DNA of 64,000 bases, taken from assembly GCF_000143415.4 (NCBI RefSeq), contig NW_003314284.1, positions 1,284,693-1,348,692 on the forward strand, in the 5' to 3' direction. How positions within the stretch are numbered: the first letter of the stretch is position 1; every line of letters begins with the position of its first letter. Shown in pieces: positions 3,576 through 14,989 of this stretch. The notes below the pieces were generated by a model. The model saw only the letters and a program-made list of their open reading frames with translations, was not told where the DNA came from and searched no databases. The position numbers were made by a program, and so were the translations under genes. The stretch is from Selaginella moellendorffii. Taxonomy: Eukaryota > Plantae > Lycopodiophyta.

Positions 3576-3749
3576 GTGTCTCTTGCTTGTCCATTCACTA
3601 ATGTAATCCAGTACATTCTTGTCTGTGACAGGATCGCTAGGAACGAAGTCAATGACCATACGTAGCTGATGACTAAACAAGTAAGTTTTGTTCTTGAGCA
3701 GCTCCTGCCATTGCAGGAATAGAATCGAGCCTGAAGGCTTATTTGCCCC

Positions 3750-4160
3750 TTTGACAAGCTCTTTGTCGTCTGTGTAGTTCGTGAGCATGATGTCTGTGAA
3801 GTCTTCCAGTTGGCTTGCAAACTCGTGGCTTTGTGCTCATCAACTATTGCTTGGAAGATATTGTCCTTCTTTGCGGCCAACCTTGACTGTCCAGTCGATT
3901 GTTGTTGATAGTTGTTTTGTCATGGAGGTGGTTCTCATGATCAGCCTTTGATCAGCCTCTGGCAAGAAGTCTGCCATGTGGAAGAGAGCAACGTCAACGA
4001 TGTCGGCAACGATCTCTTTGAACTCTCTCGACTGTTTGCAATCGCCAGTCCCGAGAAACATCAAGATATGTGTGATGATGTTGAAGATACGAGCTTCCTC
4101 ACGTCCACGACGAGCTCTCGCGGGCCTGCACCGAGGAACGCGAGAGAAGCCTGGGTCTTC
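3750..4160 (-). pseudogene. Deleted, frameshifted fragment of exon 1 of the adjacent cytochrome P450
   Basis: FLGTGDCKQSREFKEIVADIVDVALFHMADF and AAKKDNIFQAIVDEHKA are near-identical to the peptide encoded at 5000-5350. Confidence 0.85.
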
Positions 4161-4290: not shown

Positions 4291-5839
4291 CTAGTATGCA
4301 TCTTTGGAGAGTTTTGGAGTAGCAACAGCCTTGAGCAGTGGGGTCTCTGGCCAGAGAGGAGAGCAAAAGCCTTCATCGATCGTGAGATCCTTGACAGCTC
4401 TCGGGATTTCTGCGCTCCAGTCGAACGCATGGATCAAGCTCGAGACCGCGAGCTGAGCCGTCTTGAGACCCATCGTCATGGCCGGGCACGACCTCCGCCC
4501 AGATCCAAATGGAAGAAGCTCGAAATCCTGGCCCCGGACGTCCACGGCCGTCCCGGCGAATCTCTCCGGGAGAAACTCGAGTGGATTCTCCCAGTAGCTT
4601 GGGTCCATCCCGATTGCGTGAGCATTGACAAAGAGGGTGGTGCCTTTGGGTACGTCATAGCCACCGACTTTGCATGCCTGTGTCGACATGTGAGGGACGA
4701 GCAGCGGGACTGGAGGGTGTCGCCGGAGCGTCTCCTTGACGATGCACTGGAGGTATGGGAGCTTCTCTAGATCGGATTCCTCCACTCGCCGGTGCAAACC
4801 CACGACTGCCTCGAGTTCTTGCTGGGCCTTCTCCAATATTCTTGGGTGGCGGATCGTCTCCGTGACAGCCCACTCGATCGTCGCGGAGGTGGTGTGGGTG
4901 CCACCATTGAGCATCTCCTGCGATTGCGAGAATGGAATCGATTAGTCCAGTAGAGAGAGAAGAGGGGACTTCATGGCTTACTTGCACCATTGCTTTGATA
5001 AGCTCTTCGTCGTCTGCGTAGTTCGTGAGCATGACGTGTGTGAAGTCTTCCACCGCGTTGGCCTGCAAACGCGCGGCTTTGTGTTCGTCAACTATTCTCT
5101 GGAAGAACTTGTCCTTCTTCGCGGCCAGCCTCTTGAGCTGTGGGACTGTCCAGTCGATCCATCGCAGTCTCTCCGGCACAAAGTCCGCGACGTGGAACTG
5201 TAGAGCAACGTCAACGATGCCGGCAACGATCTCTTTGAACTCTCTCGACTCTTCGCAATCGCCGGTCCCGAGAAACCTCTTGCTCATCACTATCTGTGTG
5301 ATGATGTTGAAGATGAAGATGGAGACGAGCTTCCTCACGTCCACGACGCCGTTCTCCGAGCTCTCGCGAGCCACTGCGGACAGCAAAAGCGAGACCTCAG
5401 CGGCCCTCACGCTCGCAAACGAATCCATGCGCTTGCTTGTGAAGAGCTGGAGCGTGCACAGCTTCCTCATGTTCTTCCAGTGCTCGCCGTATGGGGCGAT
5501 CCCCATGATCCGGAAGTTGTAGCCCAGATGCTCTCCAGCAACCATGTAGGGCCTGGAAGCAAACGCCACGTCTTGCGTGTGGAGAACCTCCCTCGCCATC
5601 TCCGCGCTCGACACGACGATCGCACGGGTCCATCCCAGCCTCAAGAAGAGGATCGGTCCCAGCTTGTTGGAGAGCCTCTGGAGAGTGATGTGGGCGTCCT
5701 TCCCAGCGAGATGAGCCAAGTGTCCGATGAGCGGAATCCCCAATGGAGACGGGGGCAGCCGAAGCTTTGGGCGAACGCTCAACTTCCAGAGAAAGATCGC
5801 GATGGCAATGGCGATGGTACTCAAGACGTAAACCCCCAT
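4291..5839 (-). CDS. Cytochrome P450, CYP71 clan (A-type); exons 5839-4982 and 4917-4291
   Basis: Signal anchor plus LPPSP, ETLR (ExxR), PERF and heme motif PFGSGRRSCPA. A single phase-0 GT-AG intron (4918-4981) precedes the I-helix. Confidence 0.92.
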
Positions 5840-8968: not shown

Positions 8969-10523
8969 TCAGCTCTTTAAGCTGTATGTACTTTGAGCTT
9001 TCTTTTATCTGCCCGTGCAGAATTCCGTATGTTGGAAATGAACTTTTCCCTGCTCAAAGTGAGCCACTGTAACATCGTTTTAGTTTCTCAATCAGGACAT
9101 GCAAAAAAAATCACCTGTGGCATCCCATCAGTGTAGATCAGTGTAGTCTTCATATGCGAAGTTGAGTACTTTAGCCTTGCCAAAGAATCTAATAACTGCT
9201 CAGTCGTAGGTCCTGTCGAAACGAAGTTAGATTCTGGTAGTAAAATAGTAACTAGCGAGAGGTTTACCTTGCTGCCTCCTCTTGTGTCCCATATGCCCCT
9301 GGAAATGCAAAACAAACAATAAAAAACCAAATATTATAGTTCAGCTCCTGAAAAGACTCACCCAGTCGAATCGCACGAGAGTCCAGCCTGCACCAAAGAT
9401 GAAAACAGTGTTAGAATGGTGATGGTCAAAAGCTTGGGTGCTGGCTGTGATCTCTTCAAGTTGATCATGGCAATACATCCAGGTAGCTAGATGGTATCTC
9501 AAGAGGTTTAGAGGGATGAGCTCTACTCACGTTATGGAGGCCGCCCATTCTTGACATTTTGACTTTTTGAGACGATATACTCCGCGATAGTTTGATGCTC
9601 GAGGCCGAGTCTCCCTCGTGCGTGGAAAGCCAGCGTCACCTCCAAGAAGGTCGGGTGTAAACCAGATCAACGACTTGCCGCGACTCATTTGACGTAGCAT
9701 GGTGATGAATTCCTTGTCGGGCAGATTGATCCACTGCAGAGAAAATCCAAGTGTTTAGATCTTGCCAAAGTAGAAACGTTGATATGATCATACCTGGGGG
9801 ATCTCGTGCACGTAATCCGAGTAGGGAAAGTTTGGGCAGTTTTGGCCGCGGAACTTGATGTAAGCTCGGTCATAAATCCTGCGAGTGAACATCTTTAAGA
9901 AGAAGGAGAAAAACAAATTAACCTGGCTCCGGCTTCCTCATTGCTGCATGAACCAACGTATATTTGCTTGCCTTTATTCGTACCCCTGATCATCACGATA
10001 AATTAAAAATCAGCGTGAATGTTGAAGATCTTTCATTTGAAAAAAAAAACTGTAAGGAAGAACATACTCACCAAATATGCGTCTCCCAACGCTCGATTCA
10101 CTTGTAGTACGAGACTCCAACGTAGCGGGACGACTTTTTAGCGTATCTCCTCGCGCGCGTCGGCGTCTTCCTCTTCTTTCTCGTTTCTTCTTTCTTGGAT
10201 GGTCGAGCAGCGATCTTCGCACAACTAGACCTTTTGATCTTTGAGCTCGAGCTGCAAGACGAAGTCTTGATCGTAGAAGCTGCGGCCCGAGTGACCATGG
10301 AGGTGGCTTCCTTCTTTTTCTCGGCGATCATCGGATGATGATCTTGACCACCCCCCATCGCTGGTGATGGCGGTGCTAGACGACGTCGCTTTGTTCTTGG
10401 CGCCAACGACCCTGCTGAAGCTACCGGGGGCAATGTGAATGCGGCCGCAGGATCATCACAATCATCAAGGGAAGGAGCTGTTGGATAATGGGCAGCTGGA
10501 GAGAATATAGAGGTGACGGCCAT
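8969..10523 (-). pseudogene. Multi-exon transcription factor with two AP2 domains, disabled
   Basis: Spliced reading: SSRYVGVSYYK*IERWETHIW-GTNKGKQIYVGSCSNEEAGARIYDRAYIKFRG, then SNYRGVYR...WAASIT...LGAYGTQEEAARTYD*AVIRFFG. Stops at 10098-10100 and 9200-9202; 10-nt duplication at 9127-9146. Confidence 0.8.
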
Positions 10524-11880: not shown

Positions 11881-11945
11881 GAATAACAAAAGCTCGTTCT
11901 TTTCGGCTTATATGAGAGAAAAGAAAAGAAAAGCAAAAAAAGAAT

Positions 11946-14639
11946 TTAAGCTTCATAAGCTTCAATGGTCACTTCGTCGCAAACTTGTGGCGAAGTTTCA
12001 ACTAGATTTTGGTCCCTGCTACCCGGAAACAATCGAGCCTGTTCTGGGCTTGGATTTGCGAGCCATCTCCAGTAGATGGCAGCAGCCCCTACGACCGCCA
12101 CCATCGACAGCGCCGAGAGGCCACCAAAATGATTCACCTCGCTCGCAACGATGGCCACTCCCATCATAACCAGCTCTGCGAGGCTCGCTAGCGATACCTC
12201 CGTGGTTCCTACCAGGTTGGCCTGCGAGATTGGCACCGCTGTCTGAAAGACTTGCGCGTCCACCATATCGTAGACCCAGAAGCCCAGCCTTGAAACTACC
12301 TGCAAACACCGAGAAGAAATCTTTAGTAGAGCGAAAAAAAAAAACACGAAAAAAGGAGAGCTTACTATCAAAACCAAGAATGTGATGAGGGCAGCCTGAT
12401 GTTTCACTTGAGTGCTCCAGTAGACAGCAACAGCCAGAGCAAGCAGCCCCGCTTGGAATACCAAAGCAGTCAATCCCGCCTGCGAGGTGGAAACATCTAA
12501 GCAATGTTTGCAAAACTCAATCGAGTTTACTTACTTTGAGCACCCCGAGCTTTCCTATCACTGCAGAAGAGACGAATGTGGCGACGAAACCCATCAGTGC
12601 ACACATCCCGCGAAAGCTTCCAATGATCGACGGGTTCAGTCCTAGGCAAAACAATTTTTTAAGAGAGCGAGAGAGCTCTGTGTAAAGCTTTACCTTGCTG
12701 CGTTAGGAAAGACGTCATGAGGCTTCCAGGTCCAAGGACGGCATTGAAGTATAAGAGAACGTAAGCGACACTTGCTGGAAGAATTGGTTGTGACAAGTAT
12801 TGAATCCATCCACGCTTGATGGCACGAAAGCCTTCCTCGGCTGGACAATATGGAAAAAAAGAAGACAACAGTTAGTTATCTAGACGGCAGTAGAAATTCA
12901 AGGCAGCCTTACATGATTGATCTTGATATCCTTTGGACTCGGTCCAGTTACGCGTTTTGGGGCGATCTAGTACCCCTTTCGAAAGCTTATATGTACAATG
13001 AACAAGATATATCTGTAATAACAACATTGATAAGAACCAAAAGTTTAAAGATTTTACCTTACCAGGAGAGGAAGAGATGTAACCATTGCTACCGCGGCAA
13101 TGCAAATGCATTTGACAGGAGTATACCTCGACAACAATATTCCAAACAGAAGCGGACCAGCTATCTGAAAATCAAGAAAGCTTCAGCATTGAAAAGTCAC
13201 GAAAGAGAACATTATTATACCTCGCAGACTAGATCAACTCTTCTCAGTATCGCATTTGCATTTGCTAAAGCCAGAGACCGATTTGATCCTGCGAGCTGCA
13301 AAACCGAGCAAAATCGTGATTGAGATATCGAGCAGTTTTCTTGAATGAGACTGGAAATTACCTGAACGACCCAGTCCCTTTCGAAAGCAACGCCGCACGC
13401 AAGGCCAGCCAGCCGCTCCAACGCACCGAAGGTCATCAAAATGATGAACCAAGGTTTCAGGAGAAGTCCAGACGTTGTGGACGCTGTTGCTGCTCCACCA
13501 CGAAGGGCGAAAACTACCACGGCAGCAGAGACGACCATGGAGAAAGTCTGCAAATACGAAGGTTTCATACGACTAAATCCACAATACGCGTGCATACCTG
13601 AACAATGCTTAGAAAGTTAAACGATGCAGGCCTTGGCATGGAATCCATGAACGCTCCTACGCAAGGGCCACCGACGAAGATGACCAGCTGCAAGCAGTGT
13701 CCAAAGTAGCGTTAGTGAAGTGACGAAAACTTGCGGGCTTTAAACACACAATGCTTGTACGTAAAAGAAAAGAAAACACAGGATCAAACTTATAAAAACT
13801 ACCTGGCTTACGAAATTCTCCGCAGCCACGGGGAGGAAGCTGCGGTGCAGAATTGCGATAACCGCAGGAAGAGCAAAGTGCCAAGCGTGCTCCAGTAGGC
13901 AGGAAAGAAAGTGTATCCCATACAGAGCTGGTATGCAAACAATCAACGAGCCAAAAAAACACTATGAGCATTGGGATTACCTGGCCAACAAAGCTGAGCA
14001 TTGCCACAGGTAACAACGTATCGGATAGGAGAGAAATCACAGCAGGCAGTCCAAATCGCCATACTCGCTCCATGAAGCACGCAGCAACATAAGTTGCATA
14101 CATGGCTGGGGGCCAACAAGAGGAGGCACCCAGGTCCAGAGTTAAAGCGAGAGGAAAAGCCACAAGCCAAACCAGGAACAAGAAACTCCAAAATTTTGGA
14201 GGAGTTGCTTACCAAACAAGCTCTCTGGATGAGCAGGAGTTGCAGAGATTCGCGCCTGTTCTTCTAGTGTTTGTACCTGCATTCCAAAGCATTAGATTTG
14301 TCTCGCAGCCTATAGTATAATTCACCTGAAGCTCTGATAGCAAACCATCTGACAGTGATTCATCCGGCTGCGGGGATTCGCCTTCCACGACTTGGACATG
14401 GTTCTGTCCAAACTCGTGCGTAAAATGCGTTACATGAGAAGCTTGGCGCCTACAGGAAATGTATAAGGAGAAACCAAGGAAAAGAAAGGAAAAAAACCAA
14501 ACCTTTGGAGACATGGAAATCCACACTTTGGAACTTGGAGAGCACCACCGACCAATCTAATCGGACTCACAGTCGGCGCTCTCAACCTCAGATTGGAGTC
14601 ACCGACACAACGCGTAAGGGCTCCCCTTGCGAGAGCCAT
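11946..14639 (-). CDS. IREG3: Ferroportin/SLC40 transporter of the IREG3 (FPN3/MAR1) type with transit-peptide-like N-terminus. 5' exons: 14639-14503, 14449-14326, 14276-14213, [14105-13981 or 13927-13803], 13687-13598; further exons to 11946
   Basis: [89 protein letters not shown] and [16 protein letters not shown]...[14 protein letters not shown]. Splice phases are consistent across the 5' exons. Confidence 0.9.
13803..13927 (-). other. IREG3: IREG3 alternative exon 4B (125 nt, phase 1 to 0): (A)[41 protein letters not shown]
   Basis: tacCAG|CTCTG acceptor and CAG|GTAGTT donor; open frame; 19/42 aa identical to exon 4A with no gaps. Confidence 0.85.
13981..14105 (-). other. IREG3: IREG3 alternative exon 4A (125 nt, phase 1 to 0): (A)[41 protein letters not shown]
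   Basis: cccCAG|CCATG acceptor and CAG|GTAATC donor; open frame. Confidence 0.85.
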
Positions 14640-14989
14640 ACTTTGCTCACTGCATCAAACCCTGAATGAGTTCCTCCTTTGTTCTAGGAGATATAATCAC
14701 AAAACCATATCTTTGGTACTTAGCTTGGCCATCTAAAAGACGAGTGCTCGTGAGAGAAAGACGTGGGTGTCTCCTGTCCCATTATCAGACACACGAGTGA
14801 CGTGGACAGTGATAAGGCGAATCTCCATTACTGGCGCGAGCAAACCATTAGTTGGATAAACATCCTTACTTGACCTTCAAGAGATCCAGAAAACAAAAAA
14901 GAGTTTGCAAAGTAGATCCGATGAAGATGATAGGCTAGCATTCAAGAGTGAAAGATCGAAGAATCTACAAGACCAAACTTTAGAATGAT

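Follow-up and report, generated by a model that had tools for sequence, protein, structure and literature searches.

Homologous alternative exons that swap one segment of a protein are common in animal channels and transporters; they are rare in plants, and deeply conserved ones are rarer still. Animal mutually exclusive exons that arose by tandem duplication, such as exons 7a and 7b of ATE1 (PMC7797038) and other tandem-duplication-derived substitutions (PMC8373072), are adjacent homologues of equal length and phase that exchange a single protein segment and have long been conserved. A pair with the same properties occurs in a ferroportin gene of the lycophyte Selaginella moellendorffii, on the minus strand of a 64,000-nucleotide stretch (here called the window; NCBI RefSeq assembly GCF_000143415.4, contig NW_003314284.1, positions 1,284,693 to 1,348,692 of the forward strand). 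Its two exons, 4A and 4B, encode alternative versions of the first transmembrane helix (TM1), and we think it probable that they are an ancient tandem-duplicated alternative exon pair of the organellar ferroportin lineage (FPN3/IREG3/MAR1 type). Unlike the animal pairs, the Selaginella pair showed no competing RNA structures, has an intervening intron that can be spliced, and readily yields double inclusion and double skipping; it thereby resembles pairs policed by nonsense-mediated decay, with exclusivity confined to the reading frame. The splicing arrangement is of a known kind, of which this pair is a new and deeply conserved case.

To our knowledge, the animal ferroportin gene has no alternative TM1 exons. 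Its product, SLC40A1 (human and tarsier; PDB 6wbv, 8dl8, and 6vyh), belongs to the same Pfam family as the plant protein and shares its fold of 12 transmembrane helices, and every residue of the TM1 motif has a counterpart in the alignment, the position of Asp39 being acidic and that of Trp42 an invariant tryptophan. The plant protein differs from SLC40A1 in an N-terminal extension of approximately 100 residues, disordered in the structural model, and in replacement of the ligands of the S2 metal site. Closer to the Selaginella gene, and in the same clade, is Arabidopsis FPN3/IREG3/MAR1, a dual-targeted mitochondrial and chloroplast iron exporter (bioRxiv 10.1101/2020.07.15.203646) that also has glutamate at the Asp39 position. 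Whereas Selaginella has two exons for this segment, seed plants have one, with the motif E-Q-x-W-N.

The Selaginella gene was identified by a search of 1.84 billion representative proteins with its last exon, followed by a full-length search; the best named matches were "solute carrier family 40 member 3, chloroplastic," which is also the RefSeq name of the gene. Its product matches Pfam PF06963 (FPN1) with E = 1.6e-107 (score 360 bits; cut-off, 24.6), with residues 106-526 corresponding to profile positions 3-430. The splice model comprises 14 exons, 13 of them in each productive mRNA, separated by GT-AG introns of 50-115 nucleotides (Table 1). Inclusion of 4A alone or 4B alone gives an open reading frame (ORF) of 574 amino acids. 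The 4A product is identical, letter for letter, to RefSeq XP_024534749.1 (isoform X1) and the 4B product to XP_002974104.1 (isoform X2), the latter being identical also to the original Joint Genome Institute (JGI) model EFJ25059.1. The exon pair is thus already implicit in the RefSeq models, yet apparently undescribed; no paper describing it was found in the literature searched.

Table 1. Coordinates of the ferroportin gene and its alternative exons in the Selaginella window, and of the corresponding exons and intron ends in mosses
Feature	Locus	Position	Strand	Description or evidence
Ferroportin gene (SLC40 member 3; FPN3/IREG3 type)	Selaginella window	11946..14639	-	GT-AG sites and ORF continuity; RNA contigs; RefSeq; Pfam
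Exon 3	Selaginella window	14213..14276	-	Ends in phase 1; donor joined to 4A and to exon 5 in RNA contigs
Exon 4A, type A	Selaginella window	13981..14105	-	125 nt; M-E-R-V-W-R-F ... F-V-G-Q; splice sites, RNA joints, homology
4A/4B intron	Selaginella window	13928..13980	-	53 nt; removed in 3 runs, retained in a contig of the fourth
Exon 4B, type B	Selaginella window	13803..13927	-	125 nt; L-E-H-A-W-H-F ... F-V-S-Q; splice sites, RNA joints, homology
TAA met when 4A and 4B are both included	Selaginella window	13808..13810	-	Splice model
Exon 5	Selaginella window	13598..13687	-	LVIFVGGP...; remainder of TM2; acceptor joined to 4B, 4A, and exon 3
Exons A and B	Ceratodon	A 4696-4820, B 4890-5014		Intron between, 69 nt
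Exons A and B	Sphagnum jensenii	A 3668-3792, B 3889-4013		Intron between, 96 nt
Exons A and B	Physcomitrium gene 1	A 5173-5297, B 5366-5490		Intron between, 68 nt
3' end of intron before exon B	Sphagnum	L007:3870-3888		Alignment
3' end of intron before exon B	Ceratodon	L001:4871-4889		Alignment
3' end of intron before exon B	Physcomitrium	L008:5347-5365		Alignment
3' end of intron before exon B	Selaginella window	13928-13945		Alignment

Each of the two exons is preceded by AG, followed by GT, entered in phase 1, left in phase 0, and open throughout, and their peptides align without gaps at 19 of 42 identical residues. These features had been read from the letters alone in an initial annotation of the window and were confirmed, coordinates and lengths included, in every detail. 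The splice model also bore out its claims about the reading frame: either exon alone continues in frame into exon 5, inclusion of both runs into a TAA within 4B, and omission of both shifts the frame into an early stop, because 125 nucleotides is not a multiple of three (remainder 2). Only mRNAs with exactly one member of the pair encode the transporter, and exclusivity is therefore set by the reading frame. Openness by itself is weak evidence of coding, since 29% of shuffled 4B sequences remain open, and this would be the point in favor of viewing 4B as a chance-open, neutrally decaying pseudo-exon or an annotation artefact. However, the 70 of 125 nucleotides (56%) shared by 4A and 4B are unevenly placed, with 27, 29, and 15 of 42 identical at codon positions 1, 2, and 3 (Fisher p = 0.0012), such that third positions are at random-level identity and first and second positions are 64-69% identical. 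In addition, 4B is spliced into RNA in all four Selaginella runs described below and is orthologous to conserved moss exons, and a pseudo-exon or artefact is hardly credible.

The TM1 segments of approximately 150 homologues sort into two classes, type A and type B, and Ceratodon, Sphagnum jensenii, and Physcomitrium (gene 1) carry an exon of each class in a single gene. In the genomic loci of the moss proteins, all A and B exons are 125 nucleotides long and flanked by AG and GT, with A first, matching the order and phase in Selaginella, and the isoforms differ only there. Equal-length annotated isoform pairs differ only inside this exon (P0143/P0270, P0141/P0305, P0304/P0306, and P0258/P0259), and the moss isoforms include Physcomitrium XP_024365668 (B) and XP_024365669 (A) and those of Ceratodon gene M758_5G099300. 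A complete B-only ORF of Physcomitrium was present on 23 Logan transcript contigs, which are assembled independently of annotation, and a complete A-only ORF on Logan contigs of SRR10235461 and SRR1798076. With both single-exon mRNAs present, the A/B switch is shown in moss.

In a maximum likelihood tree of the 42-residue exons (42 columns), Selaginella 4B joined the moss B exons with support of 84/88, and this group joined the euphyllophyte E-Q type, including that of seed plants, and Mesotaenium with support of 85/83. The A exons formed an unresolved grade adjoining algal E-R-T-W-R sequences. Selaginella 4A is closest to the A-type exons of mosses, ferns, and Marchantia, and TBLASTN bit scores were reciprocal for exon types. 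In the four species having both, A and B exons are told apart without exception at ten positions, four of which do not vary within either class (M/L at 2, V/F at 7, R/H at 14, and G/S at 41). The nonsynonymous distance (dN) of Selaginella 4B was 0.22-0.26 to moss B exons versus 0.43-0.52 to any A exon, and that of 4A to moss A exons was 0.22-0.29. Among mosses, the ratio of dN to the synonymous distance (dN/dS) was 0.13-0.23 for A and 0-0.11 for B, with third codon positions saturated. Because of these dN and dN/dS values and the diagnostic and codon-position patterns, neutral drift of 4B is excluded for most of its history; both exon types are under purifying selection. The initial annotation had proposed that both exons are under selection, and the comparative data uphold this, since an orthologous A/B pair persists in the mosses.

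Alternatively, the Selaginella and moss pairs could stem from independent tandem duplications, their likeness being convergent. Forcing 4A and 4B together as sisters cost 15.2 lnL in an approximately unbiased (AU) test, and with p = 0.126 on 42 columns a duplication confined to Selaginella was not rejected. As this test falls short of significance, a single origin has to be argued from structure and diagnostic residues, namely, the shared order, 125-nucleotide length, and phase, the short intervening intron, whose 3' end Selaginella shares with Sphagnum, and the ten class-diagnostic positions, including R/H at 14 and G/S at 41. The placement of 4B with moss B exons and a within-class dN that is half of that between classes likewise speak against convergence, and we consider separate duplications very improbable.

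Under the preferred reading of an ancient pair, the tandem duplication would predate the split of mosses and vascular plants; the mosses (Sphagnum, Ceratodon, and Physcomitrium gene 1) and Selaginella would have retained both exons in the same order, length, and phase, and other lineages would have kept one version. Because mosses have the same pair, it should be more than 400 million years old, having been kept for approximately the age of land plants. When exon 4 is masked, the gene tree agrees with plant phylogeny and places all vascular-plant genes in one clade, which fits an ancestor with both exons and subsequent lineage-specific loss of either. Genes with an A-type exon only are found in Marchantia (liverworts), as one Diphasiastrum gene, and as one fern gene; Physcomitrium gene 2 has only a B exon (paralogues of type B); and seed plants, together with another fern gene, carry the E-Q-x-W-N exon. 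No A-type exon occurred in the seed-plant proteins sampled, and no remnant of the missing exon was detected at or above 30 bits in Marchantia, the Adiantum genes, or Physcomitrium gene 2 or at or above 25 bits in Diphasiastrum. A homologue search confined to the 4B segment recovered nothing beyond the gene's own cluster and was uninformative. By all appearances, the E-Q-x-W-N gene of ferns and seed plants would derive from B. In ferns, the A-type and E-Q-x-W-N exons reside in two separate genes (L005, Adiantum nelumboides; L006, Adiantum capillus-veneris), and this gene pair looks like the splicing pair resolved into paralogues. In the third Physcomitrium paralogue (P0316), one RefSeq isoform starts with an out-of-frame A-type exon and continues with its in-frame end, and an A exon may therefore persist in this gene, either damaged or subject to alternative splicing.

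For Selaginella, twenty listed RNA runs contain approximately half of the gene's sampled words, matching the expectation for spliced RNA. Logan contigs from four runs of four studies were placed on positions 11900-14700 of the window; such contigs drop rare variants, and they show presence, not absence, while their depth cannot rank isoforms or parts of the gene. Every constitutive junction of the splice model was confirmed. Exon 3 was joined to 4A in all four runs and 4A to exon 5 in two of them, and a 4A-only mRNA exists in Selaginella. Exon 4B is also transcribed and spliced: it was joined to 4A (13927>13981) in three runs, the fourth (run X2) having a contig unspliced through 13803-14010, and to exon 5 in all four, with a single contig of run X3 covering exons 3, 4A, 4B, and 5. 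Direct joining of exon 3 to exon 5 was likewise found in all four runs. Splice-site pairing in Selaginella thus does not impose exclusivity, and the claim in the initial annotation that exactly one exon must be used is correct for the reading frame but fails for splicing, with the both-included and both-skipped forms present in three to four of the four contig sets. The splicing switch between isoforms that it had proposed was recovered in Physcomitrium, where both single-exon mRNAs were assembled; in Selaginella, the 4A-only form alone was seen, and no joint of exon 3 to 4B was found among the best 15 of 16 joints in the four contig sets.

These contigs invite another view of present-day Selaginella, in which only 4A makes transporter and 4B, a former coding exon, serves mainly as a frame-breaking "poison" exon after 4A. 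Inclusion of 4B and double skipping would then reduce how much productive mRNA is made, whether through regulated unproductive splicing or simply as noise that is tolerated. Several observations align with this view and, together with the nonsignificant AU test, weigh against our preferred reading. Besides the missing joint of exon 3 to 4B, the upstream partner of 4B among the joints listed was only 4A or the retained intron; the both-included and both-skipped forms occurred in most runs (three and four of four, respectively), and the joint of 4A to exon 5 in only two; and rough depth bookkeeping leaves little room for direct joining of exon 3 to 4B, although contig depth cannot rank gene parts. 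The terminal branch of 4B is longer than that of 4A in Selaginella (0.37 versus 0.21), and 4B has Glu-Asn at the start of the second transmembrane helix (TM2), where all other exons are hydrophobic; both features could reflect relaxed constraint. The 4B-only RefSeq model, moreover, may have been derived from the older JGI protein model and not from reads.

Set against this, 4B keeps its frame, its length, both splice sites, and its diagnostic B-class residues, and the two assembled haplotypes encode the same 4B peptide. In dN, 4B lies no farther from the moss B exons than 4A does from the moss A exons, which would be unexpected if coding had ceased long ago, and contig data cannot demonstrate absence. 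We therefore regard an exclusively 4A-encoded transporter as a rather unlikely account. Under the preferred reading, we infer that a putative 4B-only mRNA, and its protein, would be made by Selaginella in certain tissues or under certain conditions; the reading frame, presumably aided by nonsense-mediated decay, would then enforce exclusivity in place of splice-site pairing. Caution is warranted in work on Selaginella, since RefSeq has both isoforms and the reads placed on the locus support only one.

The second assembled haplotype carries the same exon pair, with additional models for the retained-intron form and for an ORF starting inside 4A. Two extra A's behind 13952 and an A>G change at 13959 lengthen its 4A/4B intron to 55 nucleotides, retention of which keeps the frame, and RefSeq models a 634-amino-acid isoform with both copies of TM1 (P0261). 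A contig with the retained 4A/4B intron and the second-haplotype variants was present in run X1. RefSeq isoform X3 (P0264, 493 amino acids) begins at an ATG at 14060-14062 on the minus strand; this ATG lies inside 4A but out of its frame, and translation from it would enter 4B in frame. A start of this type is the sole route from a both-included mRNA to a B-type protein, the product would be without the N-terminal extension, and translation starting as far downstream as this ATG seems unlikely.

Exon 4 encodes residues 109-150, a segment that spans TM1 almost completely, runs through the TM1-TM2 loop, and ends 11 residues into TM2. AlphaFold2, given 49 homologues, produced a model with a predicted TM-score of 0.75, with predicted local distance difference test values above 90 across TM1-TM2, helices at 104-135 and 140-166, and a disordered N-terminal extension (residues 1-88). 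In a PDB fold search, the top 12 hits were all ferroportins (including human and tarsier) or the bacterial homologue, with target-normalised TM-scores of 0.77-0.86, the best ferroportin matches lying at approximately 0.85. HMMER aligned E121-H122-A123-W124-H125 of the 4B isoform to D39-R40-M41-W42-H43 of human ferroportin; 4A reads E-R-V-W-R at the same positions, with arginine in 4A and histidine in 4B at position 43. In the tarsier ferroportin structure, Asp39 and His43 coordinate the S1 metal, and mutation of these residues alters Co2+ binding and transport (PMC7655804). The swapped exon had been predicted to encode the helix with the S1 metal-site positions, carrying the two motifs given above, and the alignment, the published structure, and the AlphaFold2 model agree with this. 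E121, the acidic residue at the Asp39 position, was invariant among 49 FPN3-like sequences.

The further proposal of a swap of metal ligands fared less uniformly. Histidine at the His43 position occurs in the B exons of Selaginella, Sphagnum, and one other moss, whereas the Ceratodon and Physcomitrium B exons read E-H-T-W-R, with arginine there, compared with E-H-A-W-H in Selaginella 4B. Within the motif, the class difference that holds universally is arginine (A) versus histidine (B) at the residue after the glutamate. Of the S2 ligands considered (Cys326 and His507/508), none is kept in the HMMER alignment, C326 being replaced by S374 and H507 by M502; Met502 and Glu499 (P0258 numbering) did not vary among 49 FPN3-like proteins of plants and algae. 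The loss of S2 ligands is a clade difference, and membership in the ferroportin family stands. Should metal binding in the plant protein work as in its animal counterpart, a larger share of it may fall to TM1. The A and B helices may confer different metal binding, coupling, or gating, and the difference in metal selectivity or coupling suggested in the initial annotation is likewise conjectural.

A broader reading is that the A/B pair would be a switch, land-plant-wide or possibly older, by which the organellar iron exporter alternates between two modes of operation that differ in the residues surrounding the metal site of TM1, realized by splicing in mosses and Selaginella, by two genes in ferns, and by a B-derived form in seed plants, with the double-inclusion and double-skipping products of Selaginella acting as a regulated dosage valve and not as noise; we offer this as a possible but doubtful extension. 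The pair sits in a gene predicted to control chloroplast and mitochondrial iron and replaces the helix carrying a metal-binding site, and it provides a natural set of transporter variants for comparison, with Physcomitrium a tractable host in which precise exon knock-outs are possible. It is also a clear case in which splicing and gene duplication have taken each other's place as solutions during plant evolution.

Regarding the intron between the two exons, steric hindrance by a too-short intron was rejected as unlikely in Selaginella, where the 53-nucleotide intron is spliced and is of typical length, other introns of the gene measuring 50-72 nucleotides. A search for docking-site and selector RNA structures gave no convincing ones, only weak inverted repeats of 10-16 nucleotides with 75-90% complementarity. 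The last approximately 15 nucleotides before exon B, TTGTTTGC[G/A]TA..CAG, are conserved in the three mosses and partly in Selaginella and may represent a branch-point or regulatory element. Around the ferroportin gene, a Pfam scan of neighbouring ORFs gave no matches; by eye, the minus-strand region at approximately 9540-10140, downstream of the gene, holds a candidate AP2-domain gene with several short exons and the motifs RWETHIW and YDRAYIKFRG.

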